A program made the position numbers and the translations under genes. From Piromyces finnis finn (lineage: Eukaryota; Fungi; Neocallimastigomycota), in the NCBI GenBank assembly GCA_002104945.1, contig MCFH01000007.1, positions 372,001 through 436,000 of the forward strand: 64,000 nt of DNA, written 5' to 3'. Below are positions 4,601 to 49,341 of this stretch, in pieces. Within the stretch, counting starts at the first letter, position 1, and every line of letters starts with the position of its first letter. The notes below the pieces were generated by a model. The model ran no database searches, was not told the origin of the DNA, and saw only the letters and a program-made list of their open reading frames with translations.

Positions 4601-5915
4601 AGTAGTGCCATTACTTATTCTTTATTATCACATTCAACAAATGTATCGTCATACTGCCCGTGAATTAAAGCGTCTTGATGCTCTGAGACGATCACCAATA
4701 TATGATCATTTATCTGAAACCATAGATGGTTTGCCTACTATTCGTTCTTATCATGAACAAGAGCATTTAATCAAACATAATCAATATTTAATTAATGAAA
4801 ATAATCGACCTATCCACCTTCAAATAACTGCTGAGAGATGGATGGAAGTTCGTTTAGAATTGATTGGATCCTTTTTAGTTTTACTTAATGGTTGTGCTGG
4901 AATGCTTTTAAAAGATACTCTTTCTATATCTTTATTAGGTTTAAGTTTATCATATGCTCTTCAACTAACATCTAATCTTAATACTACAGTTCGTAATCTT
5001 TGTAATACCGAGATATATATGAATTCCGCAGAACGTCTTCTTCATTATGCAGAAGAAGTTGAAACTGAAAAACAAGATGGAAAAGAAGCACCATTAGGTT
5101 GGCCAACCCAAGGAAAAGTGGAGATTAGAAACTTAACTATGAGTTATGCACCATACTTACCACCAACTATTCGAAATATCTCTCTAGATATTAATTCATG
5201 TGAAAAAGTTGGTATAGTCGGTCGTACTGGTGCTGGTAAATCTAGTATTATTATGAATCTATTCCGAATGGTAGAACCTGAATTAGGTTCATCAATTACC
5301 ATTGATGACATATCAATTCTTGACATGAAACTCTCTAATCTTCGCAAAAATATTTCAATTATACCGCAAGAACCAGTTCTTTTCTCTGGTACTATTCGTT
5401 TTAATATGGACCCACTTAATGAGCATACAGATAGTGAAATTTGGGATGCATTAGAAAATTCTGGTGTGAAGGAATTAGTTATGAATATGGAAAATAAGTT
5501 AGAAGCTGAAGTTTTATGCCATGGAGAAAACTTTAGTGTAGGTCAAAAACAACTATTTTGTTTAGCGCGTGCTATGATACGTAATAGTCATATTATTATT
5601 ATGGATGAAGCTACTGCTTCATGTGATATTGAAACAGATTCTATTATTCAAAAAGCACTTCGTAACAATTTTAATGAATCAACAATAATAACAATTGCAC
5701 ACCGTCTAAATACTATTATTGATTATGATAAAATTTTAGTATTGGATAAAGGTGAACTTATTGAATATGATTCACCAAAGAATCTACTTTTTGAAAATGG
5801 ATCAAATAAAGAATTAATTCCTATCCATAATACTGAATTTTCAAAACTAGTCGATGAAACTGGTTTGTGCAATGCTGAATTGTTAAGACAAATGGCACTA
5901 TCTAAAAAATTTTAA
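1695..5915 (+). CDS. ABCC/MRP-family ABC transporter (Yor1/short-MRP type, TMD1-NBD1-TMD2-NBD2), 1406 aa, intronless
   Basis: NBD1 Walker A GGVGSGKSS, signature LSGGQKQR, degenerate Walker B MDDPLSAVD. NBD2 GRTGAGKSS, FSVGQKQL, MDEATAS. MRP motifs ASFFSKITYSW and FFDSNPLGRIINRFS. No TMD0. Confidence 0.95.
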   Translation: MIFRRKKNIIPVPEQPSESPYTEASFFSKITYSWENKIFKVGYNRPLQPNDIYLLPYQFKEENNEKRFYHYWNEQNNSQVSKSIFKCLWKIYGNNFIIAGILKLISDISNLIAPVFLELLLEFLENSQNESSITQLPIEDTSVISPESWQEKLKPYMGWIYISLIFICQLIYTFCGNYFSNMVLEIGLSVYATINGILYNKTFRLTNKEMQSIGGGKIVNIMSTDSYRIWQLSAYGHYIWSSPLQLFIIQALLVRSLGIWSFIGLSIFLIIIPIQLFVMKILISLRKKTASLTDERVKKTQEILGNIRIIKYFGWEKIFQNIIYKLREKELKLTKSSIITNSVTTAAFNIIPFFASALTFVAYSANGNVLTAAKVFSCHALFNKLCSPLSSLSTTFNQFTNGIIGLRRVSYIMNGKEFDNLTEINPMADYGVSIKNGNFNWEVVRPEDILEKSNREKKLRHMNSKLKKKPQPQEEEKQNELKIEMKRRHRYSQIECICKDNIDVVTDSHNINGAIATDDMLDQSKNNDATVFKNILKSLNSFCLRDINLNIKKGSLTAIVGGVGSGKSSLINAIIGEMKRESGRVIIGGSYSYCSQKAWIRNASIRDNIILGKSFDKDRYDIAVKSCALRRDFRILSNGDMTELVEGGANLSGGQKQRINLARAVYDNSDVIFMDDPLSAVDAHVSRFLFDKCINGALANKTRVLVTHQLHLLPKVDYVIVMKNGCIEEQGEYKDLLIKNGELARLLRVSGDNENEDYEESLDISANSNSNITKNDFDSDESIVNSMNANANDNKKPVQGIIIQEERSTGSISIKVYNNYIKAGGGYIICIFILLLVGLTQVIKIGSDTWLVYWTEDTLNMEINDYILIYLFWNIGQTIVIFIYYVVMANVGIRASKRVHNNAIDRIMKAPVFFFDSNPLGRIINRFSMDQDSLDNNLFLTLQIFLTSLGSTISTLALMLYASPILGVAVVPLLILYYHIQQMYRHTARELKRLDALRRSPIYDHLSETIDGLPTIRSYHEQEHLIKHNQYLINENNRPIHLQITAERWMEVRLELIGSFLVLLNGCAGMLLKDTLSISLLGLSLSYALQLTSNLNTTVRNLCNTEIYMNSAERLLHYAEEVETEKQDGKEAPLGWPTQGKVEIRNLTMSYAPYLPPTIRNISLDINSCEKVGIVGRTGAGKSSIIMNLFRMVEPELGSSITIDDISILDMKLSNLRKNISIIPQEPVLFSGTIRFNMDPLNEHTDSEIWDALENSGVKELVMNMENKLEAEVLCHGENFSVGQKQLFCLARAMIRNSHIIIMDEATASCDIETDSIIQKALRNNFNESTIITIAHRLNTIIDYDKILVLDKGELIEYDSPKNLLFENGSNKELIPIHNTEFSKLVDETGLCNAELLRQMALSKKF

Positions 5916-6098
5916 ATTTATATATATAATATATATATATTCAAATATTTTTATAATATTAATAGTGTTTAAAAATTAAGCTTTTTATATTAAAATTAAT
6001 TGTTATAACAAATTTAAATTTCAATTATATTTAAACAATAAAATATTACAAAATAATATAATTTAGTAATAAATTTATCATTAAAATTTATTTAAAAA

Positions 6099-6180
6099 CG
6101 TCATCTGCAGGGTTTGAACCTGCGCGGGCAGAGCCCATCAGATTTCAAGTCTGACTCCTTAACCACTCGGACAAACTGAC
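6099..6180 (-). tRNA. tRNA-Ser (anticodon UGA), 82 nt, long variable arm
   Basis: Reverse complement folds as a cloverleaf: anticodon arm TCAGA-CTTGAAA-TCTGA, variable arm GGGC-TCT-GCCC, T-arm GCAGG-TTCAAAC-CCTGC, discriminator G, followed by a TTTTT Pol III terminator. One acceptor-stem mismatch (G5:A68). Confidence 0.93.
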
Positions 6181-6196
6181 ATTCAGTTGTTATTGT

Positions 6197-7273
6197 TGAT
6201 ACGCTACTCACATAAAAACGTAATAAAAACTAGCCGAATAAACACGACTTAACCCATAGCGACTTATAATAAAAATAAAAGATAATAACCCTTAAAAATG
6301 AATAAATAATAATTTTATGGAAATATAACCCTTTCTTTTAAATAAATAATATTCTCTTTATTAAATAATAAATTATGAATAAAAACGACTTAATAGAGAT
6401 AATAATAAAATAAATTATTAAATAAAATAAAACGACTCAATCCAAAAATGTATTAAAATAATAAAATAATAATAAGTAAATAAAAATGAATAAATAAACT
6501 AAAAAAATAAAATGATATACATTAAATTATTAATTCTAGTGTTTTATCCAAGTGTTCTTTAGAAATTCTTTCAAACTTATATATATAAATTAACAAATAA
6601 ATAACTGAGTAATTATTACTAAAAGTGATTAATTTAAAGCCTGGAAATAGAACAATAATAACAATTTCAAAGATAAAATACAGAACTCTTTTATGTTTCT
6701 GTATAAAATGAGTGTTTATAATAATTGATACTTTTAATATTTTAATTTCATTTTAATTTTATTTTAATATTATTTTAATTTTAAATTTTAATTATTTTAT
6801 TCAAGGTATTATACATTTAATGATAGTCAATGATAATTTATAATAATTTTTCTAAATTTAAACATTTTGAAGTAATAAGAAAATCAAATAAGTAATATTC
6901 TATAATATTTTATAATACTAAGACATAATTTTAATTTATTCTTTTAATTTTAATAAATAATAACAATAGTAATAATAACATTCAATAGTTAAAAATAATA
7001 ATACATGTAATAAATGAAAATGTATAAAAGGAAGATAAAATTCTTCTTTATAAAGGGGGGACAATAAATAGACAATAAATAAATTATAAATATAATAAAG
7101 AGATAATTTAAACATAATAAAAAGAGTTTATTTTCGAGTTTTTGAGTGATTTATTTGTTAATTATAAAACATATTTTATTTTATTTTAAATTTATTGTTT
7201 CATCATTATAATATAGAATTTATTATTTATTAAAAACATTATATTATTCACAAATATATCGGTCAACGCATCA
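6197..7273 (+). repeat. LTR1 (1077 bp)
   Basis: Starts TGATACGC, ends AACGCATCA (imperfect terminal inverted repeat); near-identical to LTR2 and LTR3. Confidence 0.95.
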
Positions 7274-7281
7274 TAAAATTT

Positions 7282-7299
7282 TGGTGGAGAATCCGGGCG
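7282..7299 (+). promoter_or_regulatory. Primer-binding site, complementary to a tRNA 3' end (most likely tRNA-Ala)
   Basis: TGGTGGAGAATCCGGGCG reverse-complements to CGCCCGGATTCTCCA-CCA, resembling the eukaryotic tRNA-Ala 3' end (ATTCTCCA, discriminator A). Confidence 0.8.
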
Positions 7300-7413
7300 T
7301 GACCAAAGATATGAAAAAGAATAATATTAATAATAATACTAATAAATTCTAAGATATTAAGCGTTTATAAAAAAACAGTTTACACTTAATTTAATTTTAT
7401 TATATATTCTTCT

Positions 7414-7445
<32 letters not shown>

Positions 7446-8673
7446 AAAAAAAAAAAAAAATTTAATTATATATATAAAAGGAAATATATATAATTTTAAA
7501 ATTATAAAAATTTTAATATTTCTAAAAAGGGTATTTAAGAAATTAAAGATTAAGTGATTAATAGTTAGTCATATACGTTACACAAGGAAGAAAATTTCTA
7601 TAATTCCTATAATCGTTTCCGTTCTTATTATTAATAAGGATAACTTAATCCATTCAGTTAGTTTGTTATATTTCTGATCTATCCAGGGGATCAGTGTGAT
7701 AGTAAAAACTAGGAAAAAAGTTAATCCTTCTCAGCAGTTAATAATAAGATCATAATTTGAATTAAATATACAATTTTTATTTCTTAATTAAGAGAATAAA
7801 TTAATTCACCAGTGCTTATTTGTAGAGGCGGCTGTTGAATGAAAAACTTCTTAGCTTAAGGCTACCTACATATTAAGCGAATAATTTATTTCAATATTCT
7901 TAATTATTGACTAAAAATTTTTTAATTTAAATTATAACAAAAAAAAAAAATAGTAAGTATATATTGGTTGTTGTTATATAATAGACTGAGTTCGAAATAT
8001 AGCAATAATTAAAGCAATTATTATTTAGAGAGTAAGGCGGGTACACACTCAGCAAGAGGGAGTAGGTATACTAGACAGCCTTTATTTGATTCTCAAGTAA
8101 GAGAGTAGCAAGTTCGGCTGAAAATCCTGAGTAAGGAGCAGAACTTTGGAAGTGAAAATTTATCATTTAAAGGTGGGGGTTTAGTAGGGATCCGAAAGTC
8201 TTTATAGTCACTGTGCCTCGGGTGCCTAAAAATAAATAAATAATTGTAACAATATATATAAACTATTATAATTAAATTAAATAAAAAAAAATATACATAT
8301 TCTTATAAATTCCTAATTGCAAAAAAAAAAAAAAAAAAAAAAAAAATTATTCTTTCATTCTTCCTTGATCATTTAAAATTGAGAGTTAATAAATAGCATT
8401 TAAATTTATAATTAGATATTATTCCGTAAAGCTTCTATTATTCCTGACTAATAATAATAATATAATATACTTTCTATAAAATACTTCTCCGATCTGATCT
8501 CATTCAATATTAAATTTCATTATTTATATAATTTTTATAATTTATATAATCCATATAATATATATAATTTATACAATATATATATAGATTTCTGTTGTAT
8601 TACTTATTTTTTATTCTTTTATTTTTCCTTAATATACTTCTCAATTTCTAAATAATTTTCTTTAATTTTTTTT

Positions 8674-8710
<37 letters not shown>

Positions 8711-8944: not shown

Positions 8945-10168
8945 ATGAAGATCAGTGAAATCACTAAAATACTACCTAGAATTGGTAGTCAAGATAGGGA
9001 TATCGAAAGCTGGGCTGAAGAATTCAGCAGAGTTATGGACCTATCTGATATCAATGATCCCAAAAAGATATTCGCTTGGGCAAAGGAATGTGTCCAAGGT
9101 AGATTAAAAGGAATCATTGATGACTTAAAAACAGAAAGTGATACTGGAACAAATTATCCTAGTATCGAAGATATTAAAGAGGCTATTGAAGAATACTTAG
9201 AAATCACGCCTCAAGAAAAATGCTTCAATGTTAAGTCTCTAAAAATTAGAAGAGGAGAAAGTATTAAGGATTTCAACTGGAGATACGGAAACTTATATAA
9301 AAATCTTAATGTTGGATCCCAACTATTCGTTACTGTTAAGGATTATACTAATTCCATTATTTCTCGTCCTTTTATCAGAACTCAAGTAATCACTGCCCAA
9401 CCTAAAGATATAGAAGCCGCTTTTAAGGTTGCCGAATTAGCTGAATCAGCAACTGAAGTTCCTCAGTATCATAATGTAAATATGTTTACTGATAACCAAC
9501 CCTACTTTGATCCATATCAAAACCAAAATTATAATCTATTTACTCAACATAGTGGTGGAACTAATTATAATTATTTTAATAATAATGATAGTCCATATAC
9601 TTATAATGGATACTACAATAATAACTATAATAATAATTATGATAATAATAATAATTATAATAATTATAATATGCGATTCAATGGAAACTATAATATGAGA
9701 AATCAACGTTTTAATAAGAGAAATAATTACAGAAATAATTACCCAAATAATTTCAATACTAATAATAATAGTTATAGTAACAATTATAATAATAATTATA
9801 ACAATAATTATAACAACTATCAAGGTGATCAAAATGCATATAATAATGGTTATAGTAAATACCCTTATAATTCTAGTACATTTAATAACAATAATTATTC
9901 CAATATGGAAGAAAATAAATCATATCAAAATTCCACTAATTATTCTAATAATGTTAATGCTAATAAAATGAATACTACTACTAATAGAGTTAATCAAACT
10001 ACATCTCAAAGTCAAGTGAATATGTTTAACCAGTCTCAAAGAAATAAATGTTTTAGATGTCAACAAGTAGGCCACAAAATGCAAGATTGCAAATATACAT
10101 TCCAAGAACTTGCAGAAATGGAAAAACAAGGCCTTATAAACTCTAATCAAAATCATTTAAACTTATGA
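8945..10168 (+). CDS. gag: Gag of Gypsy copy 1 (capsid, Asn/Tyr-rich region, CCHC zinc knuckle), 407 aa
   Basis: Zinc knuckle [14 protein letters not shown]; position upstream of pol. Confidence 0.93.
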
Positions 10169-10190
10169 GTGGGAGAAGGAATACTCCCAT
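10156..10190 (+). promoter_or_regulatory. Putative -1 ribosomal frameshift signal, copy 1
   Basis: T_TTA_AAC heptamer in the gag frame (10156-10162). A -1 slip enters the pol frame. After a 6-nt spacer comes stem GTGGGAG/CTCCCAT (10169-10190). Confidence 0.75.
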
Positions 10191-13100
10191 AAATCAAACC
10201 AATACTACTTTTGCTACAATATCAGTACCAGTAAATGAAGAAATTACTATTCCAGTAATAAGAAAAGCTAAAAAGAATACTGATATTAAACCATATAAAA
10301 GAACTACCAAAGAAAAATTAAGTGACAATCCACAACCAATTAGAGTTCCAAGTAATGAGACTAGAGAACCATTAAATAATACTTATGAAGATATAATTGA
10401 AGTTCCAAATAATGAAGTAGAAATGGAGACTGTAATTGAAAATGAAAATAATAATAATAATAATAATCTTAATAATAATTATAATAATAATATTAATAAT
10501 AATATGAGTATGAATAATGACACTAATATAAATAATAATGAAAGTAATAAAATAGATAATAACATTAATGATAATAATATTAATAATAACACTAATTCAA
10601 CAGAAGCATTAAAACAATTAGATCCTTCATTCATTAATCAACCCACTATAGATAAAGCTAAACGAAATAATAAAAAAGAACGAGAAAAGGAAATAATAGA
10701 ATTAGCAAAAGATATTGAACTTCCAAGTCAAAAAGAAAAAGATGTACCAAATGAAAAAGGTACAAAAAGATTAGTTATATCAGCAGATCAAGAAAAATAT
10801 AATATAACTAAAGATATAGGAGAAAAATTTGCAAATATAACAATAGGTCAACTACTTGAAATTAGTCCTAAATTAAAAACAGAACTTTCAAAAGCATTAA
10901 AATTTACTAAAATTATTGAGGATGAATCTACAATTCTTTCCACCATAAGAAAAGATAAAGTTGTGAAATCAAAATGCAAAATAGAAGGAATAGAAACTAC
11001 TGTATATTTGGATTCCTGTTCATCTATAAATATGATTACTAGAAAATTCTTATTAGAAAATAATATTCCATTAAAACCAGTTTCAAAAATTAGAGAAACT
11101 TTATATCAAGCTTATTCCAATACTACTATTGAGTCGCATCTATATGAAATTGAAATTACTATTGGTAATATAACATCTAAAGAAATATTTAGACTTATTG
11201 AAAAAGAAGATATATTCCAGGTCTTAATTGGTGTAGAAACTTTAGCTAATATGAAATTAATTATGGACTTTTCTGATCATACTTTATATCAGAAAACTGA
11301 TGATATTCACAAAATTGGATCTTTTGAAAGTATTAATGAAATGAATCAAACTAACTTAATAGAAGAATTTGATGAAGAAATTAATCAAGATGCATTAATA
11401 TATTACTTAACTAGTCAGAATGATAAATATCAAGATTTAGAAATTAAAACTACTAGTGATTCTAAATTACAACTTATTAATAAAATAGTTGATGAAACAC
11501 AAAAAGAAGCAAAAGACCAACTGAAGAATCTTTTAATAACTAATATAGATGTTCTAGCTAATGATACTGATGATTTGGGTAAATCAAAATTATTAGCTCA
11601 TGAAATTAAATTAAATCAAGATGATCCTATTAAACAGAAAATGTATCGTATTTCTAATAAAGAACATATGGAAATTCTAAAAGAAGAAATAGGAAAGCTT
11701 TTAAAGAATGATTTAATAGAACCATCACAATCATCTTGGTCTTCTCCAGTTTTATTAGTACCAAAAAAGAATGGAAAATGGAGGATGTGTGTAGATTATA
11801 GAAAATTAAATTCTATAACAATAAAAGATTCATATCCACTTCCATATATTAAGAAATATTATTTTCTATTGGTAATAATGTAAAATATTTATCTACATTG
11901 GATTTATTCTCTGGTTTTCATCAAATACCAATGAAGAAAGAAGATATTGATAAAACATGTTTTACAACAATATTTGGAAATTATAATTACAAAGTAATGC
12001 CTTTTGGTTTATGTAATGCTCCAGCAACCTTTCAAAGAGAAATGAACCGTATATTTCTACCACTTATTGGAAAATGTTTATTTGTTTATATGGATGACCT
12101 TTTAGTATTTTCTCCAAGTCTTGAACAACATATATTAGATCTTCAAAAGGTTTTTAATATAATAAAAGAAAATGGTATAAAAGCAAATCTTTCAAAATGT
12201 CATTTCTTAAAACAAGAAGTAGAGGTCCTTGGTCATATTCTATCAGTAGAAGGTGTCAAACCAGTTGAAAAGAAAATTGAAACTATTAAAAATTGGAAGT
12301 CACCAACAAACCTTACACAGCTAAGATCATTTTTAGGAGCTATAGGATATTACAGGAAGTTTATAAAAGATTTTGCCCAAATTGCTCATCCATTATTTAA
12401 ATTATTAAAAAAGGGTATGAAATTTGAATGGACATCTGAAACTGAACAAAGTTTCCAAATACTAAAAGAAAGACTGATTAAGTCTCCTATTTTAAAATAT
12501 CCTGACTATGATAAATATTTTATTATAAGAACTGATGCATCACTTAATGGTATTGGTGGTGTATTACTTCAAAAAGATGAAAATAATGTTGAACATCCAA
12601 TTCATTATGTTAGTAGGTCTTTAAATGATAGTGAAATTAATTATAGTATAACTGACTTAGAAGGAACCGCAGCTTTTTATTGTTGTAAGAAATTTAAATC
12701 TTATATAAGTGGGAATAAAGAAGAAACGATATTATATACTGACCATAAACCTTTAGTTGGCTTATTTAATAATAAAGAACCAAATAATGCTCGTCAAACA
12801 CGCTGGGTTACTACACTTAGTATGCTCAAGGTAAAAGTCAAATATGAACAAGGAAAGAAAAATGTAGTCGCTGATGCATTATCTAGACTAATACCAGACA
12901 ATAAAAATGATATAAAAATTTCACTAGCTACCTTTAATAATAATGATGGTGAAACTACTAAAAATAATATTTTAAATTCAAATAAAGATTTTTACTCTAA
13001 AAATAATGAAAATATAGTTTATTCTTGTAATTTTAATAATTCATGTATTAATGATAATGAAATAAATAAAAATAACAATATTAATCCTTATATTGATAAA

Positions 13101-14876
13101 AATATTGACCTTAATAAAAATTCTTGTGTTAATGAAAGTGTAAATTCAATTAAATATTCTAAACTTAATAATGTTGATTTAAATAATTATATCTCTACTA
13201 ATAATAATTCACATGGGAGTAAAAATATAAATATAAATTTTAAAAATGATATTGATAAAAGCAAGAATAATAATTATTTTAAAAATAATGAAATAAATGA
13301 ATTATCTGAATATAATAATGATATTGTTTATAATGAAGTAATGAATAGTGATATCAATGACTTAAATAACACTTGCTACTTAAATAATAAAATAGATATA
13401 AATAAAAATGATTTTCCTAAATTAAATGAAAATACTACAACTAACTATTATAATTCTAACATCCACAATAATAATAATCTTAATAAAATTCATTCATTTG
13501 AACCATCTAATATTTTTAATATTGATAAAAATAATTATTTTAATATAGAAAATAAAATAAAAATATCCTCCGTTTCATTTGAAAATGAAAAAGAAGAAGT
13601 ATTAGATAATGATACTGACTTAGAAGCTGTACTTGTAACTGAAGTAACTGATACATCTATTGGTACCACCAGTGAAAATAATTCTAATGAATATCCAGGA
13701 AGTAATAAAATTAAAGACTTTCTTAAAAAGAAAATTATCTTAATAAATGGAATAAAGTACTATAAAGATGGTGACAATATCAGAAAAGTTGTCGAAGATA
13801 AAGAAGAGAAAATAGAATTACTATTAGCTGCACATTCAATAGGTCATGAAGGATTTTATAAAACTTATAACCGATTAAAGAAAAATTATTATTGGAAAAA
13901 TATGTCTAAAGATGTAGAACTACTTGTAAAAACTTGCCATGATTGTCAATTAAAGAGACCTCAACCTATTAATAGTGGTACTGAATCATTTGCTACAAAA
14001 CCAGGTCTACCATTCACTAGAGTTGGTTTAGATATTATTGGACCACTACCAATAACTAAAAATAATAATAAATATATAATAGTACTTGTAGACTATTTTA
14101 CCAAATGGGTTGAAGCTGAACCACTAAAGTCAATTGAATCTACGGATGTTATAAAATTTCTTACAAATGTATTTTCTAGACATGGTACTCCGGAAATATT
14201 AATTACTGATAATGGTCCACAATTTACTTCTGATGCTACTAAAGGCTTCCTTGATTTATATGGTATATATGTTCAATATTCTAGCACTTATCATCCAGAA
14301 ACAAATGGGCAAGTAGAAAATCGTAATAGAGAAATTGTTAAAAATATTCGACTACTAGGAAACTCAAATAAAGAATGGGACGAAGTTCTACCATCTGCTC
14401 TATGGGCTCTACGTACTTGTAAAAATGAAGTAACAAAATTTTCTAGTTTTGAATTATTATATGGTCGTACTGACCTTCAACCATTTGAACTTATGATAGA
14501 ATATAATAATAAAAATGAATACGAAACTCCAGAAGAATATTTAATAAATAAATTTACTACACATTGGGAATGGATTATTGAAGTTACCAAAAATATTCAG
14601 AATGCTAATAAATTATGGGAAAATAGAAGAAAACAAAAAGCTTCAATGAATACTGCATTCTCAGCTGGTGATTTAGTACTTGTTAGAAATTTTTCAAGAA
14701 GAAAGTTAGATCCATTTTTCATGGGACCTTTCCGTATTATTAAAATGGAATTTAATACTGCTACATTATGTGACCCTATTAGTGGTGCAATAGCTGAAAG
14801 AAATGTTCATCAAAAGAATTTAGTTCATTATCATACTTGGCACAATGAGACTTCCAGGGACGAAGTCCAAACTTAA
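10165..14876 (+). pseudogene. pol: Pol of Gypsy copy 1, broken by a 1-nt deletion in RT
   Basis: Near-identical to copy 2 but lacks the G of ATT-GAA-GAA between 11850 and 11851, giving two ORFs (10165-11883 and 11898-14876). A sequencing error cannot be excluded. Confidence 0.85.
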
Positions 14877-14885
14877 GTGGGGGGA
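14875..14885 (+). promoter_or_regulatory. Polypurine tract of copy 1
   Basis: AAGTGGGGGGA ending 3 nt before LTR2; same motif at 23564-23574 before LTR3. Confidence 0.85.
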
Positions 14886-14888
14886 TCT

Positions 14889-15964
14889 TGATACGCTACT
14901 CACATAAAAACGTAATAAAAACTAGCCGAATAAACACGACTTAACCCATAGCGACTTATAATAAAAATAAAAGATAATAACCCTTAAAAATGAATAAATA
15001 ATAATTTTATGGAAATATAACCCTTTCTTTTAAATAAATAATATTCTCTTTATTAAATAATAAATTATGAATAAAAACGACTTAATAGAGATAATAATAA
15101 AATAAATTATTAAATAAAATAAAACGACTCAATCCAAAAATGTATTAAAATAATAAAATAATAATAAGTAAATAAAAATGAATAAATAAACTAAAAAAAT
15201 AAAATGATATACATTAAATTATTAATTCTAGTGTTTTATCCAAGTGTTCTTTAGAAATTCTTTCAAACTTATATATATAAATTAACAAATAAATAACTGA
15301 GTAATTATTACTAAAAGTGATTAATTTAAAGCCTGGAAATAGAACAATAATAACAATTTCAAAGATAAAATACAGAACTCTTTTATGTTTCTGTATAAAA
15401 TGAGTGTTTATAATAATTGATACTTTTAATATTTTAATTTCATTTTAATTTTATTTTAATATTATTTTAATTTTAAATTTTAATTATTTTATTCAAGGTA
15501 TTATACATTTAATGATAGTCAATGATAATTTATAATAATTTTTCTAAATTTAAACATTTTGAAGTAATAAGAAAATCAAATAAGTAATATTCTATAATAT
15601 TTTATAATACTAAGACATAATTTTAATTTATTCTTTTAATTTTAATAAATAATAACAATAGTAATAATAACATTTAATAGTTAAAAATAATAATACATGT
15701 AATAAATGAAAATGTATAAAAGGAAGATAAAATTCTTCTTTATAAAGGGGGGACAATAAATAGACAATAAATAAATTATAAATATAATAAAGAGATAATT
15801 TAAACATAATAAAAAGAGTTTATTTTCGAGTTTTTGAGTGATTTATTTGTTAATTATAAAACATATTTTATTTTATTTTAAATTTATTGTTTCATCATAA
15901 ATATTAGAATTTATTATTTATTAAAAATATTATATTATTCAAAAATATATCGGTCAACGCATCA
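14889..15964 (+). repeat. LTR2, shared central LTR (1076 bp)
   Basis: Same termini; flanked by a PPT on the left and a PBS (15973-15990) on the right. Confidence 0.95.
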
Positions 15965-16104
15965 TAAAATTTTGGTGGAGAATCCGGGCGTGACCAAAGA
16001 TATGAAAAAGAATAATATTAATAATAATACTAATAAATTCTAAGATATTAAGCGTTTATAAAAAAACAGTTTACACTTAATTTAATTTTATTATATATTC
16101 TTCT

Positions 16105-16136
<32 letters not shown>

Positions 16137-17362
16137 AAAAAAAAAAAATTTAATTATATATATAAAAGGAAATATATATAATTTTAAAATTATAAAAATT
16201 TTAATATTTCTAAAAAGGGTATTTAAGAAATTAAAGATTAAGTGATTAATAGTTAGTCATATACGTTACACAAGGAAGAAAATTTCTATAATTCCTATAA
16301 TCGTTTCCGTTCTTATTATTAATAAGGATAACTTAATCCATTCAGTTAGTTTGTTATATTTCTGATCTATCCAGGGGATCAGTGTGATAGTAAAAACTAG
16401 GAAAAAAGTTAATCCTTCTCAGCAGTTAATAATAAGATCATAATTTGAATTAAATATACAATTTTTATTTCTTAATTAAGAGAATAAATTAATTCACCAG
16501 TGCTTATTTGTAGAGGCGGCTGTTGAATGAAAAACTTCTTAGCTTAAGGCTACCTACATATTAAGCGAATAATTTATTTCAATATTCTTAATTATTGACT
16601 AAAAATTTTTTAATTTAAATTATAACAAAAAAAAAAAATAGTAAGTATATATTGGTTGTTGTTATATAATAGACTGAGTTCGAAATATAGCAATAATTAA
16701 AGCAATTATTATTTAGAGAGTAAGGCGGGTACACACTCAGCAAGAGGGAGTAGGTATACTAGACAGCCTTTATTTGATTCTCAAGTAAGAGAGTAGCAAG
16801 TTCGGCTGAAAATCCTGAGTAAGGAGCAGAACTTTGGAAGTGAAAATTTATCATTTAAAGGTGGGGGTTTAGTAGGGATCCGAAAGTCTTTATAGTCACT
16901 GTGCCTCGGGTGCCTAAAAATAAATAAATAATTGTAACAATATATATAAACTATTATAATTAAATTAAATAAAAAAAAATATACATATTCTTATAAATTC
17001 CTAATTGCAAAAAAAAAAAAAAAAAAAAAAAAAAATTATTCTTTCATTCTTCCTTGATCATTTAAAATTGAGAGTTAATAAATTGCATTTAAATTTATAA
17101 TTAGATATTATTCCGTAAAGCTTCTATTATTCCTGACTAATAATAATAATATAATATACTTTCTATAAAATACTTCTCCGATCTGATCTCATTCAATATT
17201 AAATTTCATTATTTATATAATTTTTATAATTTATATAATCCATATAATATATATAATTTATACAATATATATATAGATTTCTGTTGTATTACTTATTTTT
17301 TATTCTTTTATTTTTCTTTAATATACTTCTCAATTTCTAAATAATTTTCTTTAATTTTTTTT

Positions 17363-17401
<39 letters not shown>

Positions 17402-17635
17402 ATAAATTTTATATTATTTTATACTTTATCAATTTATCAATTATTTATATATTCAATTCTTTTCATTTTTAATTTTATAAATATTATTAATATTATTATA
17501 TTATTAAAGTTCAAAACACATATATATATATATAATATATAAATTCCAATTATTTTCTTTATTATCATTTATTTCAAATTAAATTATTCTTTTATTTTAA
17601 TTATTTTACCTTATAAGAAATTTATATATACAAAA

Positions 17636-18859
17636 ATGAAGATCAGTGAAATCACTAAAATGCTACCTAGAATTGGTAGTCAAGATAGGGATATCGAAAG
17701 CTGGGCTGAAGAATTCAGCAGAGTTATGGACCTATCTGACATCAATGATCCCAAAAAGATATTCGCTTGGGCAAAGGAATGTGTCCAAGGTAGATTAAAA
17801 GGAATCATTGATGACTTAAAAACAGAAAGTGATACTGGAACAAATTATCCTAGTATCGAAGATATTAAAGAGGCTATTGAAGAATACTTAGAAATCACGC
17901 CTCAAGAAAAATGCTTCAATGTTAAGTCTCTAAAAATTAGAAGAGGAGAAAGTATTAAGGATTTCAACTGGAGATACGGAAACTTATATAAAAATCTTAA
18001 TGTTGGATCCCAACTATTCGTTACTGTTAAGGATTATACTAATTCCATTATTTCTCGTCCTTTTATCAGAACTCAAGTAATCACTGCCCAACCTAAAGAT
18101 ATAGAAGCCGCTTTTAAGGTTGCCGAATTAGCTGAATCAGCAACTGAAGTTCCTCAGTATCATAATGTAAATATGTTTACTGATAACCAACCTTACTTTG
18201 ATCCATATCAAAACCAAAATTATAATCTATTTACTCAACATAGTGGTGGAACTAATTATAATTATTTTAATAATAATGATAGTCCATATACTTATAATGG
18301 ATACTACAATAATAACTATAATAATAATTATGATAATAATAATAATTATAATAATTATAATATGCGATTCAATGGAAACTATAATATGAGAAATCAACGT
18401 TTTAATAAGAGAAATAATTACAGAAATAATTACCCAAATAATTTCAATACTAATAATAATAGTTATAGTAACAATTATAATAATAATTATAACAATAATT
18501 ATAACAACTATCAAGGTGATCAAAATGCATATAATAATGGTTATAGTAAATACCCTTATAATTCTAGTACATTTAATAACAATAATTATTCCAATATGGA
18601 AGAAAATAAATCATATCAAAATTCCACTAATTATTCTAATAATGTTAATGCTAATAAAATGAATACTACTACTAATAAAGTTAATCAAACTACATCTCAA
18701 AGTCAAGTGAATATGTTTAACCAGTCTCAAAGAAATAAATGTTTTAGATGTCAACAAGTAGGCCACAAAATGCAAGATTGCAAATATACATTCCAAGAAC
18801 TTGCAGAAATGGAAAAACAAGGCCTTATAAACTCTAATCAAAATCATTTAAACTTATGA
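17636..18859 (+). CDS. gag: Gag of Gypsy copy 2, 407 aa
   Basis: Near-identical to copy 1 (I/M and R/K differences); CCHC knuckle. Frameshift heptamer at 18847-18853. Confidence 0.93.
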   Translation: MKISEITKMLPRIGSQDRDIESWAEEFSRVMDLSDINDPKKIFAWAKECVQGRLKGIIDDLKTESDTGTNYPSIEDIKEAIEEYLEITPQEKCFNVKSLKIRRGESIKDFNWRYGNLYKNLNVGSQLFVTVKDYTNSIISRPFIRTQVITAQPKDIEAAFKVAELAESATEVPQYHNVNMFTDNQPYFDPYQNQNYNLFTQHSGGTNYNYFNNNDSPYTYNGYYNNNYNNNYDNNNNYNNYNMRFNGNYNMRNQRFNKRNNYRNNYPNNFNTNNNSYSNNYNNNYNNNYNNYQGDQNAYNNGYSKYPYNSSTFNNNNYSNMEENKSYQNSTNYSNNVNANKMNTTTNKVNQTTSQSQVNMFNQSQRNKCFRCQQVGHKMQDCKYTFQELAEMEKQGLINSNQNHLNL

Positions 18860-21800
18860 GTGGGAGAAGGAATACTCCCATAAATCAAACCAATACTACT
18901 TTTGCTACAATATCAGTACCAGTAAATGAAGAAATTACTATTCCAGTAATAAGAAAAGCTAAAAAGAATACTGATATTAAACCATATAAAAGAACTACCA
19001 AAGAAAAATTAAGTGACAATCCACAACCAATTAGAGTTCCAAGTAATGAGACTAGAGAACCATTAAATAATACTTATGAAGATATAATTGAAGTTCCAAA
19101 TAATGAAGTAGAAATGGAGACTGTAATTGAAAATGAAAATAATAATAATAATAATCTTAATAATAATTATAATAATAATATTAATAATAATATGAGTATG
19201 AATAATGACACTAATATAAATAATAATGAAAGTAATAAAATAGATAATAACATTAATGATAATAATATTAATAATAACACTAATTCAACAGAAGCATTAA
19301 AACAATTAGATCCTTCATTCATTAATCAACCCACTATAGATAAAGCTAAACGAAATAATAAAAAAGAACGAGAAAAGGAAATAATAGAATTAGCAAAAGA
19401 GATTGAACTTCCAAGTCAAAAAGAAAAAGATGTACCAAATGAAAAAGGTACAAAAAGATTAGTTATATCAGCAGATCAAGAAAAATATAATATAACTAAA
19501 GATATAGGAGAAAAATTTGCAAATATAACAATAGGTCAACTACTTGAAATTAGTCCTAAATTAAAAACAGAACTTTCAAAAGCATTAAAATTTACTAAAA
19601 TTATTGAGGATGAATCTACAATTCTTTCCACCATAAGAAAAGATAAAGTTGTGAAATCAAAATGCAAAATAGAAGGAATAGAAACTACTGTATATTTGGA
19701 TTCCTGTTCATCTATAAATATGATTACTAGAAAATTCTTATTAGAAAATAATATTCCATTAAAACCAGTTTCAAAAATTAGAGAAACTTTATATCAAGCT
19801 TATTCCAATACTACTATTGAGTCGCATCTATATGAAATTGAAATTACTATTGGTAATATAACATCTAAAGAAATATTTAGACTTATTGAAAAAGAAGATA
19901 TATTCCAGGTCTTAATTGGTGTAGAAACTTTAGCTAATATGAAATTAATTATGGACTTTTCTGATCATACTTTATATCAGAAAACTGATGATATTCACAA
20001 AATTGGATCTTTTGAAAGTATTAATGAAATGAATCAAACTAACTTAATAGAAGAATTTGATGAAGAAATTAATCAAGATGCATTAATATATTACTTAACT
20101 AGTCAGAATGATAAATATCAAGATTTAGAAATTAAAACTACTAGTGATTCTAAATTACAACTTATTAATAAAATAGTTGATGAAACACAAAAAGAAGCAA
20201 AAGACCAACTGAAGAATCTTTTAATAACTAATATAGATGTTCTAGCTAATGATACTGATGATTTGGGTAAATCAAAATTATTAGCTCATGAAATTAAATT
20301 AAATCAAGATGATCCTATTAAACAGAAAATGTATCGTATTTCTAATAAAGAACATATGGAAATTCTAAAAGAAGAAATAGGAAAGCTTTTAAAGAATGAT
20401 TTAATAGAACCATCACAATCATCTTGGTCTTCTCCAGTTTTATTAGTACCAAAAAAGAATGGAAAATGGAGGATGTGTGTAGATTATAGAAAATTAAATT
20501 CTATAACAATAAAAGATTCATATCCACTTCCATATATTGAAGAAATATTATTTTCTATTGGTAATAATGTAAAATATTTATCTACATTGGATTTATTCTC
20601 TGGTTTTCATCAAATACCAATGAAGAAAGAAGATATTGATAAAACATGTTTTACAACAATATTTGGAAATTATAATTACAAAGTAATGCCTTTTGGTTTA
20701 TGTAATGCTCCAGCAACCTTTCAAAGAGAAATGAACCGTATATTTCTACCACTTATTGGAAAATGTTTATTTGTTTATATGGATGACCTTTTAGTATTTT
20801 CTCCAAGTCTTGAACAACATATATTAGATCTTCAAAAGGTTTTTAATATAATAAAAGAAAATGGTATAAAAGCAAATCTTTCAAAATGTCATTTCTTAAA
20901 ACAAGAAGTAGAGGTCCTTGGTCATATTCTATCAGTAGAAGGTGTCAAACCAGTTGAAAAGAAAATTGAAACTATTAAAAATTGGAAGTCACCAACAAAC
21001 CTTACACAGCTAAGATCATTTTTAGGAGCTATAGGATATTACAGGAAGTTTATAAAAGATTTTGCCCAAATTGCTCATCCATTATTTAAATTATTAAAAA
21101 AGGGTATGAAATTTGAATGGACATCTGAAACTGAACAAAGTTTCCAAATACTAAAAGAAAGACTGATTAAGTCTCCTATTTTAAAATATCCTGACTATGA
21201 TAAATATTTTATTATAAGAACTGATGCATCACTTAATGGTATTGGTGGTGTATTACTTCAAAAAGATGAAAATAATGTTGAACATCCAATTCATTATGTT
21301 AGTAGGTCTTTAAATGATAGTGAAATTAATTATAGTATAACTGACTTAGAAGGAACCGCAGCTTTTTATTGTTGTAAGAAATTTAAATCTTATATAAGTG
21401 GGAATAAAGAAGAAACGATATTATATACTGACCATAAACCTTTAGTTGGCTTATTTAATAATAAAGAACCAAATAATGCTCGTCAAACACGCTGGGTTAC
21501 TACACTTAGTATGCTCAAGGTAAAAGTCAAATATGAACAAGGAAAGAAAAATGTAGTCGCTGATGCATTATCTAGACTAATACCAGACAATAAAAATGAT
21601 ATAAAAATTTCACTAGCTACCTTTAATAATAATGATGGTGAAACTACTAAAAATAATATTTTAAATTCAAATAAAGATTTTTACTCTAAAAATAATGAAA
21701 ATATAGTTTATTCTTGTAATTTTAATAATTCATGTATTAATGATAATGAAATAAATAAAAATAACAATATTAATCCTTATATTGATAAAAATATTGACTT

Positions 21801-23565
21801 TAATAAAAATTCTTGTGTTAATGAAAGTGTAAATTCAATTAAATATTCTAAACTTAATAATGTTGATTTAAATAATTATATCTCTACTAATAATAATTCA
21901 CATGGGAGTAAAAATATAAATATAAATTTTAAAAATGATATTGATAAAAGCAAGAATAATAATTATTTTAAAAATAATGAAATAAATGAATTATCTGAAT
22001 ATAATAATGATATTGTTTATAATGAAGTAATGAATAGTGATATCAATGACTTAAATAACACTTGCTACTTAAATAATAAAATAGATATAAATAAAAATGA
22101 TTTTCCTAAATTAAATGAAAATACTACAACTAACTATTATAATTCTAACATCCACAATAATAATAATCTTAATAAAATTCATTCATTTGAACCATCTAAT
22201 ATTTTTAATATTGATAAAAATAATTATTTTAATATAGAAAATAAAATAAAAATATCCTCCGTTTCATTTGAAAATGAAAAAGAAGAAGTATTAGATAATG
22301 ATACTGACTTAGAAGCTGTACTTGTAACTGAAGTAACTGATACATCTATTGGTACCACCAGTGAAAATAATTCTAATGAATATCCAGGAAGTAATAAAAT
22401 TAAAGACTTTCTTAAAAAGAAAATTATCTTAATAAATGGAATAAAGTACTATAAAGATGGTGACAATATCAGAAAAGTTGTCGAAGATAAAGAAGAGAAA
22501 ATAGAATTACTATTAGCTGCACATTCAATAGGTCATGAAGGATTTTATAAAACTTATAACCGATTAAAGAAAAATTATTATTGGAAAAATATGTCTAAAG
22601 ATGTAGAACTACTTGTAAAAACTTGCCATGATTGTCAATTAAAGAGACCTCAACCTATTAATAGTGGTACTGAATCATTTGCTACAAAACCAGGTCTACC
22701 ATTCACTAGAGTTGGTTTAGATATTATTGGACCACTACCAATAACTAAAAATAATAATAAATATATAATAGTACTTGTAGACTATTTTACCAAATGGGTT
22801 GAAGCTGAACCACTAAAGTCAATTGAATCTACGGATGTTATAAAATTTCTTACAAATGTATTTTCTAGACATGGTACTCCGGAAATATTAATTACTGATA
22901 ATGGTCCACAATTTACTTCTGATGCTACTAAAGGCTTCCTTGATTTATATGGTATATATGTTCAATATTCTAGCACTTATCATCCAGAAACAAATGGGCA
23001 AGTAGAAAATCGTAATAGAGAAATTGTTAAAAATATTCGACTACTAGGAAACTCAAATAAAGAATGGGACGAAGTTCTACCATCTGCTCTATGGGCTCTA
23101 CGTACTTGTAAAAATGAAGTAACAAAATTTTCTAGTTTTGAATTATTATATGGTCGTACTGACCTTCAACCATTTGAACTTATGATAGAATATAATAATA
23201 AAAATGAATACGAAACTCCAGAAGAATATTTAATAAATAAATTTACTACACATTGGGAATGGATTATTGAAGTTACCAAAAATATTCAGAATGCTAATAA
23301 ATTATGGGAAAATAGAAGAAAACAAAAAGCTTCAATGAATACTGCATTCTCAGCTGGTGATTTAGTACTTGTTAGAAATTTTTCAAGAAGAAAGTTAGAT
23401 CCATTTTTCATGGGACCTTTCCGTATTATTAAAATGGAATTTAATACTGCTACATTATGTGACCCTATTAGTGGTGCAATAGCTGAAAGAAATGTTCATC
23501 AAAAGAATTTAGTTCATTATCATACTTGGCACAATGAGACTTCCAGGGACGAAGTCCAAACTTAA
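18856..23565 (+). CDS. pol: Intact Pol of Gypsy copy 2 (PR-RT-RNase H-Asn-rich spacer-integrase), 1569 codons from the overlapping ATG
   Basis: PR YLDSCSS; RT LDLFSGFHQI, MPFGL, YMDD; RNase H TDAS, DHKPL, ADALSR; IN HSIGH..CHDC, LDIIGPL, TDNGPQF, GQVENRN, GPF motif. No chromodomain visible. Confidence 0.96.
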   Translation: MSGRRNTPINQTNTTFATISVPVNEEITIPVIRKAKKNTDIKPYKRTTKEKLSDNPQPIRVPSNETREPLNNTYEDIIEVPNNEVEMETVIENENNNNNNLNNNYNNNINNNMSMNNDTNINNNESNKIDNNINDNNINNNTNSTEALKQLDPSFINQPTIDKAKRNNKKEREKEIIELAKEIELPSQKEKDVPNEKGTKRLVISADQEKYNITKDIGEKFANITIGQLLEISPKLKTELSKALKFTKIIEDESTILSTIRKDKVVKSKCKIEGIETTVYLDSCSSINMITRKFLLENNIPLKPVSKIRETLYQAYSNTTIESHLYEIEITIGNITSKEIFRLIEKEDIFQVLIGVETLANMKLIMDFSDHTLYQKTDDIHKIGSFESINEMNQTNLIEEFDEEINQDALIYYLTSQNDKYQDLEIKTTSDSKLQLINKIVDETQKEAKDQLKNLLITNIDVLANDTDDLGKSKLLAHEIKLNQDDPIKQKMYRISNKEHMEILKEEIGKLLKNDLIEPSQSSWSSPVLLVPKKNGKWRMCVDYRKLNSITIKDSYPLPYIEEILFSIGNNVKYLSTLDLFSGFHQIPMKKEDIDKTCFTTIFGNYNYKVMPFGLCNAPATFQREMNRIFLPLIGKCLFVYMDDLLVFSPSLEQHILDLQKVFNIIKENGIKANLSKCHFLKQEVEVLGHILSVEGVKPVEKKIETIKNWKSPTNLTQLRSFLGAIGYYRKFIKDFAQIAHPLFKLLKKGMKFEWTSETEQSFQILKERLIKSPILKYPDYDKYFIIRTDASLNGIGGVLLQKDENNVEHPIHYVSRSLNDSEINYSITDLEGTAAFYCCKKFKSYISGNKEETILYTDHKPLVGLFNNKEPNNARQTRWVTTLSMLKVKVKYEQGKKNVVADALSRLIPDNKNDIKISLATFNNNDGETTKNNILNSNKDFYSKNNENIVYSCNFNNSCINDNEINKNNNINPYIDKNIDFNKNSCVNESVNSIKYSKLNNVDLNNYISTNNNSHGSKNININFKNDIDKSKNNNYFKNNEINELSEYNNDIVYNEVMNSDINDLNNTCYLNNKIDINKNDFPKLNENTTTNYYNSNIHNNNNLNKIHSFEPSNIFNIDKNNYFNIENKIKISSVSFENEKEEVLDNDTDLEAVLVTEVTDTSIGTTSENNSNEYPGSNKIKDFLKKKIILINGIKYYKDGDNIRKVVEDKEEKIELLLAAHSIGHEGFYKTYNRLKKNYYWKNMSKDVELLVKTCHDCQLKRPQPINSGTESFATKPGLPFTRVGLDIIGPLPITKNNNKYIIVLVDYFTKWVEAEPLKSIESTDVIKFLTNVFSRHGTPEILITDNGPQFTSDATKGFLDLYGIYVQYSSTYHPETNGQVENRNREIVKNIRLLGNSNKEWDEVLPSALWALRTCKNEVTKFSSFELLYGRTDLQPFELMIEYNNKNEYETPEEYLINKFTTHWEWIIEVTKNIQNANKLWENRRKQKASMNTAFSAGDLVLVRNFSRRKLDPFFMGPFRIIKMEFNTATLCDPISGAIAERNVHQKNLVHYHTWHNETSRDEVQT

Positions 23566-23577
23566 GTGGGGGGATCT

Positions 23578-24671
23578 TGATACGCTACTCACATAAAAAC
23601 GTAATAAAAACTAGCCGAATAAACACGACTTAACCCATAGCGACTTATAATAAAAATAAAAGATAATAACCCTTAAAAATGAATAAATAATAATTTTATG
23701 GAAATATAACCCTTTCTTTAAATAAATAATATTCTCTTTATTAAATAATAAATTATGAATAAAAACGACTTAATAGAGATAATAATAAAATAAATTATTA
23801 AATAAAATAAAACGACTCAATCCAAAAATGTATTAAAATAATAAAATAATAATAAGTAAATAAAAATGAATAAATAAACTAAAAAAATAAAATGATATAC
23901 ATTAAATTATTAATTCTAGTGTTTTATCCAAGTGTTCTTTAGAAATTCTTTCAAACTTATATATATAAATTAACAAATAAATAACTGAGTAATTATTACT
24001 AAAAGTGATTAATTTAAAGCCTGGAAATAGAACAATAATAACAATTTCAAAGATAAAATACAGAACTCTTTTATGTTTCTGTATAAAATGAGTGTTTATA
24101 ATAATTGATACTTTTAATATTTTAATTTCATTTTAATTTTATTTTAATATTATTTTAATTTTAAATTTTAATTATTTTATTCAAGGTATTATACATTTAA
24201 TGATAGTCAATGATAATTTATAATAATTTTTCTAAATTTAAACATTTTGAAGTAATAAGAAAATCAAATAAGTAATATTCTATAATATTTTATAATACTA
24301 AGACATAATTTTAATTTATTCTTTTAATTTTAATAAATAATAACAATAGTAATAATAACATTTAATAGTTAAAAATAATAATACATGTAATAAATGAAAA
24401 TGTATAAAAGGAAGATAAAATTCTTCTTTATAAAGGGGCGGACAATAAATAGAGAATAAAAGACATAAACAGATAATAAATAAATTATAAATATAATAAA
24501 GATTTAATTTAAAACATAATAAGAGTTTATTTTCGAGTTTTGAGTGATTTATTTGTTAATTATAAAACATATTTTATTTTATTTTAAATTTATTGTTTCA
24601 TCATTATAATATAGAATTTATTATTTATTAAAAACATTATATTATTCACAAATATATCGGTCAACGCATCA
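23578..24671 (+). repeat. LTR3 (1094 bp)
   Basis: Same termini; carries extra sequence and substitutions just after the TATAAAGGGG motif relative to LTR1/2. Confidence 0.95.
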
Positions 24672-25150
24672 TTTGAGGAAGCATAAAATTTATAATAATT
24701 TGTCAGTAATATAATGCCAAAATTTCATGTCACGAATACTAGTGAAATTACAATTTCAAGATCACTTGGAATTGTGAAATCACTTATGAAAATTCAAAAT
24801 CAACAAATATTTTATTTTCAAATAAATTATAAAATTTTATTAAGAAATATTTAAAAATTTAGGAAAGGTTAAAATATGACCTTAACCCTTAATAATTTTT
24901 ATAATAAATAACTTTAACCCTTATCGTTAAAATGGAATAAGAAAAAACACGCGTATCTCCTCAACGAATGACGATTTTTGAATAAAAATGTTTTGGTTAT
25001 AATTACGTTCGTTAGAAAGCCACGCTCGAGACAAACAACATATCTTAAAATCAGGTCAATATCTCTGCTGGTTCACGAGATATTCCAATTTAAAGATATT
25101 TTGTTAGCAATGATTAATTGTTTATTCAGAGAATGATCACCCCTGATATA
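24672..25150. mobile_element. Possible DNA-transposon remnant abutting LTR3
   Basis: GC- and CpG-richer than its flanks, two TTAACCCTT motifs (~24882, ~24914) and an inverted repeat AATATCTC-N11-GAGATATT. No matching second terminus or ORF found. Confidence 0.3.
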
Positions 25151-47628: not shown

Positions 47629-47700
47629 CTCCGCATAGGGGAATCGAACCCCTGCCGCCACGGTGAGAGCGTGGAATCCTAGCCACTGGACCAATGCGGA
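47629..47700 (-). tRNA. tRNA-Glu (anticodon CUC), 72 nt
   Basis: TCCGCAT/ATGCGGA acceptor stem, anticodon arm CCACG-CTCTCAC-CGTGG, T-arm CAGGG-TTCGATT-CCCTA region, TTTT shortly downstream. Confidence 0.95.
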
Positions 47701-47715: not shown

Positions 47716-48337
47716 TGATAACGGATTGGTAGTTATATTACAACTTTTTAACTACTTCTTCTGTTATCTTATATTGTTTTATCTCGACAGCTATTGTACG
47801 AGCTTTAACAATATCTACTAGTTTTATTAATTTATTTTAAGTTATTTTATAATTTTAATAGTTTTATTATTTTAATAATATTTATATAGAATAATAACAC
47901 CAGATTTATTCTATAAAATATTATTTATTATTAACACAATAATTACAAATTAGACAAGTTTAATTTCGTTTTTATATTTTCTTTTATTTATTGTTCTTAC
48001 GCTCTTTTTAACAATAATTTTTATTATATAAAAACTTATTTTTTGTCTTTTAAATATTATTATGTATTCACTAATTAATTATATTAACTATTATTAAAAT
48101 TTAACTTATTATTAGTAATCTAAGTCTTCTCATTTTCTACTAAAAATTATTATTATTCTTTATAATAAAAATTATTTTTATAATTTAACCCAATCAAATA
48201 TATAAATTTATAAAATATTTGATTTTATGTAAATTATATTTTTATAATAAACTATATAAAATTATTTAATAATTATTTTATAATAAAAATTTCTACTAAT
48301 ATCAAATGTATAATATATTTATAATTATTATTTATCA
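47716..48337. mobile_element. Probable solo LTR (622 bp) of a second LTR family
   Basis: Termini TGATAA...TTATCA (perfect 6-bp inverted repeat), flanked on both sides by TTCT (47712-47715 and 48338-48341). Begins 15 nt upstream of tRNA-Glu. Confidence 0.55.
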
Positions 48338-49341
48338 TTCTGAAAAATAATGAAATTAATAAATATAAAATTATTATTATACCTGATTTTTAAGTTAACC
48401 CTAAAAGTAACTTAAAACAAGTTATAGTTTAATTAAGTACTTTACCAAAATTCTTAAATAAAATTAATCCTAAACACTGCATATATTTTGATTATTGAAA
48501 GAAAATAATAAACTTTAACTAATCGAGATCAAAATATATAACTTTTGTTAAATTAATTGTTAAATTAAATATTTAATAACTTCGTTAGTAAATTACACTT
48601 TAAAAGTAAACAAATATAATAATTCATGTTATAAAATAATATAATTAAACACCTTTATTAAAACATTAAAAAATAATTATTATTTTAATTAATTGTAAAA
48701 TAAACAACTTTTTATATTCTTTAACTTTTAATTATTTCTTTTATTGTTATTTCTAATTACTTTTATTACTTTTATTGTAAATAGTTATTAATTTTATTGT
48801 TTTAATGTAAATAGTTTAAATTCAAAAGAAAATATAAATACATGTAAATATTCTTATTTTAATCATTATTATTATTATTAATAAAGAAATATTATATAGT
48901 TAGATTAATATTTTATAATTTTAATAATCACTTTTATACTTAAATAAATAAAATTTTAAATATTTAAATATTAGAAAAACAAGTGTTTCTAATAAAACAA
49001 TTTAGTGTTTTAACAAAACAATTTTATTAATTTTTATAAAAACGATTTTAAATCTTAATCAATATAACTTATATAGTTATAACAAAAGATATAATATAAT
49101 AATCACTTTTTGAAGTAAAATTCAAAATTAAGATTATTATCAAATTATATCAATTCAAAGAAAGAAACAAATAGATAATATTTTTTTGGCTATAATCTTA
49201 ATTTTCAAAACAGTAACTACTCGTAAAAGAATTAATAAACTTTCATTTTAATAGCATAATAAAATATTAAATCAAATTGTAATGATAAGGGTTTTTAATT
49301 TAATAAAAAAAAAAACATCAGAAATAATACTATAGATTTAA

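Follow-up and report, generated by a model that had tools for sequence, protein, structure and literature searches.

Integration upstream of tRNA genes is a textbook case of a mobile element that settles where it does no harm, and it is known from yeasts and social amoebae. One such element is Ty3 of Saccharomyces cerevisiae, whose insertions fall at the start site of Pol III, about 15 nt ahead of the mature 5' end of tRNAs (PMC5006619, PMC5911963). Its aim depends on two integrase contacts, one between the C-terminal domain and TBP, the other between a vestigial chromodomain (residues 446-511) and Brf1 (PMC8632968), a contact with Tfc1 lets it insert in both orientations (PMC8632968, PMC5911963), and its pol is reached by a +1 frameshift (PMC5911963). 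DGLT-A of Dictyostelium discoideum, also of the gypsy type, inserts 13-33 nt (mostly 13-18) upstream of tRNA genes (PMC5006619, PMC6101501) in either orientation (PMC5911963); it has no chromodomain (PMC5006619, PMC6101501) and binds Tfc4 of TFIIIC via RNase H and the integrase N-terminal extension (PMC6101501). Among fungal Ty3/gypsy elements, Tj1 (Schizosaccharomyces japonicus), Tca8, Tyl3, Ylt1 and Tyl6 are found, or have been shown, to lie a few bases upstream of tRNA starts (PMC4600332, PMC5911963). The tRNA-targeting gypsy elements reviewed so far (Ty3, Ty3p, Tj1, Tca8, Tyl3, Ylt1, Tyl6, DGLT-A and Skipper-2) have ascomycete yeasts or amoebae as their only hosts (PMC5911963). The initial annotation of the DNA considered here knew of no description of tRNA-gene targeting in anaerobic gut fungi, and our full-text literature search likewise found no report of it.

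The element of interest, which we call family 1, is a fungal Ty3/gypsy element at tRNA start sites, as are Tj1, Tca8, Tyl3, Ylt1 and Tyl6; their hosts are all Ascomycota yeasts, whereas its host is an anaerobic gut fungus, Piromyces finnis. Two tandem units of it lie in the window, that is, the whole 64-kb stretch of DNA that was analysed. ARAGORN called two tRNA genes in the window (Ser and Glu), both on the minus strand (Table 1). Its bounds for tRNA-Ser(tga) are 6098-6181 (-), which include one extra wobble pair (the eighth) atop the acceptor stem; by the canonical ends, taken from the drawn ARAGORN structure, the mature 5' G is at 6180 and the discriminator at 6099. With these ends the gap to the LTR (6181-6196) has the 16 nt claimed for it at the outset, and gene and element are divergent, as had also been claimed (LTR (+) at 6197, tRNA (-)). 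The final 4 nt of this spacer, TTGT, would be the target-site duplication. The acceptor stem of the tRNA has one G.A mismatch, seen also in other genomic copies. An ORF for an ABC transporter (1,406 aa; a host gene, window 1695-5915) ends 183 nt from the tRNA-Ser 3' end.

At tRNA-Glu, a spacer of 15 nt (47701-47715) is followed by the LTR start TGATAACGG. The initial annotation had taken this for a similar element at a similar distance; the spacer stands, whereas the element proved to belong to a different family (family 2) that is gag-PR-only, and it is the U5 end of its LTR that faces the tRNA (from homology to a full copy, L110). Elsewhere in the window are a host NDT80/PhoG-like ORF (37147-39204) with a 36-nt tandem repeat inside it (37888-38175) and long periodic repeats with a 9-15-nt period at ~44.3-45.5 kb (44260-45480). 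About 4 kb from tRNA-Glu there are two tandem copies of a non-LTR retrotransposon, 97% identical and on the minus strand (51702-56933 and 57108-62378), whose ORFs (53082-56444 and 57361-61884) carry APE endonuclease and RT domains.

Table 1. Features of the tRNA genes and LTR elements in the window (positions are those of the window).
Feature	Position	Strand	Remarks
tRNA-Ser(UGA), insertion target	6099..6180	-	ARAGORN; same 5' sequence at other loci
Spacer between tRNA-Ser 5' end and LTR	6181..6196	.	16 nt; 15 nt by ARAGORN bounds
Family 1 5' LTR	6197..7273	+	1,077 nt, TGATACGC...GCATCA
Primer-binding site TGGTGGAGAATCCGGGCGT	7282..7300	+	8 nt 3' of LTR
gag	8945..10168	+	407 aa from ATG; CCHC zinc knuckle near C-terminus
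pol part 1	10147..11880	+	Aspartic protease (weak Pfam matches) and N-terminal third of RT
T_TTA_AAC heptamer	10156..10162	+	In gag frame, 3 nt before gag stop; G+C-rich hairpin next
pol part 2	11853..14873	+	RT, RNase H, N-rich spacer, integrase
Polypurine tract AAGTGGGGGGA	14875..14885	+	3 nt before next LTR
Middle LTR, common to two tandem units	14889..15965	+	99.4% identical to first LTR
Second internal region	15966..23576	+	gag frame open 17543-18856
Third LTR	23577..24672	+	1,094-1,096 nt (two alignments); 97% identical to other two
tRNA-Glu(CUC), second target in window	47629..47700	-	ARAGORN
Solo LTR, family 2	47716..48337	-	622 nt, perfect TTCT/TTCT, 15 nt from tRNA-Glu
Older solo LTR, third family	48341..49152	.	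Flanks ATTC/ATTC

Judged by its sequence, family 1 is an autonomous Ty3/gypsy (Metaviridae) LTR retrotransposon with gag, protease, RT, RNase H and integrase. The hallmarks of the group are present: direct LTRs of 1,076-1,126 nt with TG...CA ends, a primer-binding site (PBS) that starts with TGG, a polypurine tract (PPT) and 4-bp duplications. In the array of the window the PBS stands 8 nt past each 5'-type LTR and the PPT 3 nt ahead of each 3'-type LTR, while the middle LTR has a PPT upstream and a PBS downstream. Pfam matches run in the gypsy order (RVT_1, RT_RNaseH, Integrase_H2C2, rve), with weak protease matches upstream. The integrase has the HHCC and DDE motifs and a GPF C-terminal domain, and a low-complexity, N-rich spacer of ~290 aa (about 12,900-13,700) lies between it and RNase H. 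G+C is ~19-20% both in the element leader and in a related metagenome contig. The pol frame is -1 relative to gag and open from 10147 only, and the heptamer together with the hairpin at the end of gag would act as a -1 ribosomal frameshift site leading from gag into pol. In the first unit pol has a one-base frame break near 11,850, inside RT, which is seen in this copy only; the pol frame of the second unit runs for 1,575 codons without a break (18838-23562).

Comparison of the window with itself showed that 6196-15965 is repeated at 14888-24672 with 99.4% identity, which gives the order LTR-internal-LTR-internal-LTR; the third LTR is 17-19 nt longer than the first and middle ones. The array has no matching duplication (5' flank TTGT, 3' flank TTTG). 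Most likely, this tRNA-Ser was hit twice and the LTRs that had come to adjoin each other then recombined. An unequal exchange in a single element fits the array less well, because the duplication would then persist. A second array with a shared middle LTR was found at locus L014.

Genome-wide, the LTR's first 404 nt, used as a query, retrieved 390 candidates (41 of them scored), and a 23-mer at the LTR start had ~174 genomic matches (0 in the reversed control). We sampled 99 of these ~174 LTR starts (96 fetched and the three in the window), a sample that favours well-preserved copies; once identical flanks were collapsed and edges running into the element's own PPT set aside, 71 informative 5' edges were left. 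At 17 of the 71 an ARAGORN tRNA 5' end faces the LTR start at 12-18 nt, with the mode at 14-15 nt (12 nt, one site; 13 nt, two; 14 nt, five; 15 nt, five; 16 nt, three; 18 nt, one). The target genes are those for Pro, Trp, Ala (with and without an intron), Met (two kinds), Ile, Thr (two), Gly, Ser (two) and Cys; the 17 sites represent 11 anticodon types and have different spacers and different duplications. Nine further edges (9/71) face, at the right distance, a tRNA-like sequence with a B box that ARAGORN did not call, and a Rfam scan of 20 flanks lacking an ARAGORN call gave no match at E 0.1 or better. Since neither program calls them, the tRNA-like status of these sequences is a matter of A- and B-box resemblance. 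At 45 of the 71 edges the TG... terminus of another LTR lies within 3-9 nt, most of these termini belonging to recurrent families, and anonymous DNA was found at the LTR start in none of the 71. With ~2,900 tRNA candidates (a rough upper count) in 56.5 Mb, random insertion would place about 0.01 of the 71 edges at 12-18 nt from a facing tRNA 5' end, against 17 seen, and chance is therefore excluded. The initial annotation had proposed a Pol III-targeted retrotransposon and had set against this proposal the prospect of most copies lying off Pol III genes with no distance peak near 15-17 nt. The opposite was found, with copies at 12-18 nt (17 + 9 of 71) or, for the rest, stacked, which supports the proposal for tRNA and tRNA-like genes. 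The reading that we favour, at a probability of about 0.92, is that the family 1 integrase complex is guided to tRNA genes by the Pol III pre-initiation complex assembled there.

The targets found are tRNA and tRNA-like genes only. No LTR was seen at five 5S genes (all in identical, homogenised rDNA repeats) or at two U6 genes, a small sample. The 5S rRNA genes, spaced at 8,534 nt and preceded by the same sequence each time (G000:C153:5379-22565; L144-L146), are therefore part of the rDNA repeat unit. Viewed from the side of the tRNA genes, 10 of 20 sampled genes of two tRNA species have another tRNA directly upstream; where the upstream DNA is free, 7 of 10 carry an LTR-type terminus at 12-16 nt. 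The paired genes (L121, L123, L124, L129, L131, L132, L134, L136-L138) are fixed pairs, the upstream member being a Glu-like tRNA for one species and tRNA-Gly(tcc) for the other, and their gap of only 6-10 nt is too short to admit an insertion 12-18 nt from the downstream gene.

Two other kinds of sequence were encountered beside family 1 LTRs. At L001 and L005 (also L009 and L010), a repeat that is at least 400 nt long, has 98.5% identity between loci and is richer in G+C lies upstream of the LTR. It starts as a tRNA-like module, in which an A-box-like stretch is accompanied by a perfect B box, GGTTCGACCCC; the inferred 5' end of this module lies 14-16 nt from family 1, and family 2 uses the repeat both ways. 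The repeat looks like a mobile decoy for tRNA-targeting elements. In addition, foldbacks of ~45 nt (palindromes of the TGTAAGAA...TTCTTACA type) occur at LTR junctions at L017, L028, L038, L062 and L082.

About 63% of the sampled copies do not directly adjoin a tRNA. Where another LTR abuts, the spacing in the stack is the 4-nt duplication; at L009, for example, the order is tRNA-like gene, TATC, family 1 LTR, TATC, family 2 LTR. The stack at tRNA-Glu in the window shows the same pattern: an LTR of the third family was the first to enter, at ATTC, and family 2 followed at TTCT, one base further out. Each new copy therefore keeps to one distance from the gene and displaces the older ones outward. 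We followed 16 stacked copies for 10 kb in the direction of the expected gene; six of these walks arrived at a tRNA in the correct orientation, each time with an LTR terminus 13-17 nt in front of it. One could suppose instead that family 1 homes to the termini of resident LTRs and that tRNA genes are merely the first landing places, an idea that draws on the 45 edges abutting another LTR-type terminus and on some insertions that have an LTR on either side and lack a tRNA within 400-600 nt. We consider this very unlikely, in that 26 of the 71 copies adjoin a tRNA or tRNA-like gene without any intervening LTR, and the abutted termini come from many unrelated families with different sequences. 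Moreover, targeting at a constant distance from the tRNA would leave each new copy no place but the border of the LTR that arrived before it, and thus itself predicts abutting termini. The same few bases are struck repeatedly, and as older copies move outward they form head-to-tail stacks.

The orientation of family 1 is strict. Among 37 loci read on both flanks, a tRNA was found at the LTR start in nine and at the LTR end in none. When a genome-wide pattern was used, in which an LTR terminus is joined to a B box 60-88 nt away, family 1 gave 28 start-facing and 0 end-facing cases (controls 0); both terminal words (11-12-mers) are invariant in 39/39 family 1 LTRs read. Family 2 gave 10 versus 13 in the same test. 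Since family 2 goes both ways, the strict orientation belongs to family 1 and not to the target. The full copy of family 2 (L110, 5-4543; G000:C164:386634-396633) is 4.5 kb long and has gag (CCHC) and a protease-like ORF, with RT and IN absent; the family is presumably moved by the enzymes of another.

Full family 1 elements have LTR pairs (1,076-1,106 nt) that are 100% identical in 4 of 6 cases, and perfect 4-bp target duplications are present at 5 of 6 full elements and at 16 of 20 solo LTRs. On these sequence features, family 1 is young and probably still active. Its youth bears on a second alternative, namely that insertion is random and that copies survive only beside tRNA genes, those elsewhere being purged by selection. 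Ordinary genes do lie nearby (the ABC transporter ORF close to tRNA-Ser), so insertions elsewhere could be costly; selection, however, cannot yield a precision of 12-18 nt, a 28:0 orientation, or the reuse of one 4-nt target, and copies whose LTRs are still 100% identical have not existed long enough for such a sieve to act on them. Anonymous intergenic DNA, moreover, is plentiful, though no flank among the 71 lies in it. We regard this alternative as very improbable. Finally, that the association stems from duplicated tRNA-plus-LTR blocks or redundant contigs rather than from separate insertions is hardly credible, as identical flanks do occur at two or three places (L005/L009/L010, L033/L034, L029/L030, L047/L053) but the 17 tRNA sites are those left after collapsing them, varied in anticodon, spacer and duplication.

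Direction of the integrase complex to Pol III machinery on tRNA genes raises the question of how the position is read. The distance to the 5' end is equal for 72-nt tRNAs, 84-nt Ser tRNAs and intron-containing Ala and Ile tRNAs (~93 nt), which argues for a ruler that runs from the 5' end (transcription start, A box) and not from the B box. The intasome would be tethered by protein contacts at the start site, either with TFIIIB (TBP/Brf1) or with the tauA part of TFIIIC; to name one of the two as the partner would be a guess. The strict orientation implies that the tether is asymmetric. The integrase stops 12 residues past its C-terminal SH3-like domain, which leaves no room for a chromodomain, and no Pfam Chromo match was found in the pol of the element, in agreement with the initial annotation, which had described an integrase with a short C-terminus and no chromodomain. 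Of the relatives with a solved structure, the Ty3 polyprotein (7Q5B, E 2e-81) is the best match, and the alignment to it halts at the GPFR motif, with 39 residues remaining here versus 128 in Ty3. The short end is shared by at least 70 relatives, in which the alignment reaches within 13 residues of their end. The predicted integrase is thus without the chromodomain by which chromoviruses and Ty3 proper are recognised, and, as it ends right after the SH3-like domain, the contact cannot be the one that Ty3 makes through its C-terminal chromodomain.

Family 1 and Ty3 are both Ty3/gypsy elements and both insert about 15 nt upstream of mature tRNA 5' ends, but family 1 is set apart by its strict orientation, its short integrase, its -1 frameshift signal and its 4-bp duplication. 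Ty3 goes in both ways, compared to 28:0 for family 1; the Ty3 integrase carries a C-terminal vestigial chromodomain that the family 1 integrase lacks; and the +1 frameshift of Ty3 has its counterpart in a predicted -1 heptamer (TTTAAAC) with a hairpin. The target duplication of Ty3 is 5 bp long, and its primer is initiator tRNA-Met, from which the PBS of family 1 differs. Taken together, the missing chromodomain, the strict orientation, the 4-bp duplication and the -1 frameshift tell us that family 1 differs from Ty3, and only that. Identity to Ty3 7Q5B is ~37% over the C-terminal two-thirds of RT plus RNase H (counted from the alignment), so that Ty3 is no closer to family 1 than are plant and animal gypsy elements (38-42%). 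DGLT-A is like family 1 in having no chromodomain; it differs in inserting in either orientation and in having a single gag-pol ORF, where family 1 has gag and pol in separate frames. Tj1 expresses pol by stop-codon suppression, whereas family 1 has the signal for a -1 frameshift.

The primer of family 1 also deserves comment. The 19-nt PBS is common to at least four LTR families with unrelated termini (window 7282-7300; L114-L119), and the PBS of family 2, which starts TGGTGGAGAAC, has the same first 10 nt. No tRNA gene ending in the complement of the PBS was found in the whole assembly; among 20 distinct sampled tRNAs the best match was 9 nt, to tRNA-Trp. The PBS is not complementary to the sampled initiator-type tRNA-Met, and the earlier claim that the primer is not tRNA-Met(i) is upheld. 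Either a tRNA that the assembly lacks or an RNA of another kind may serve as the primer.

The closest database relatives of family 1 (56-87% identity) are metagenome sequences and proteins that bear the label of the JGI Orpinomyces project. Three metagenome contigs with close pol relatives (L140-L142), which are short and break at repeats, contained no tRNA. Family 1 might represent a gut-fungus-wide lineage in which targeting is independent of that of Ty3 and DGLT-A and in which a chromodomain-less integrase docks asymmetrically on TFIIIB or tauA, a tentative proposal to which we would give somewhat less than even odds. If true, this would be a third, mechanistically distinct solution, in an experimentally tractable family that still looks active.

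The behaviour described here is of a known kind and the host group is new. Ty3-like behaviour is seen in a gut fungus on a large scale, with ~174 LTR starts of family 1 and several other families at the same sites, and it follows an orientation rule shown by neither Ty3 nor DGLT-A. Family 1 therefore offers a natural comparison for asking how often, and via which contacts, integrases learn to read the Pol III machinery. Its insertion habit also accounts for much of the repeat architecture (stacks and tandem arrays) around tRNA genes in this genome, an architecture that matters for the annotation and assembly of very AT-rich genomes.
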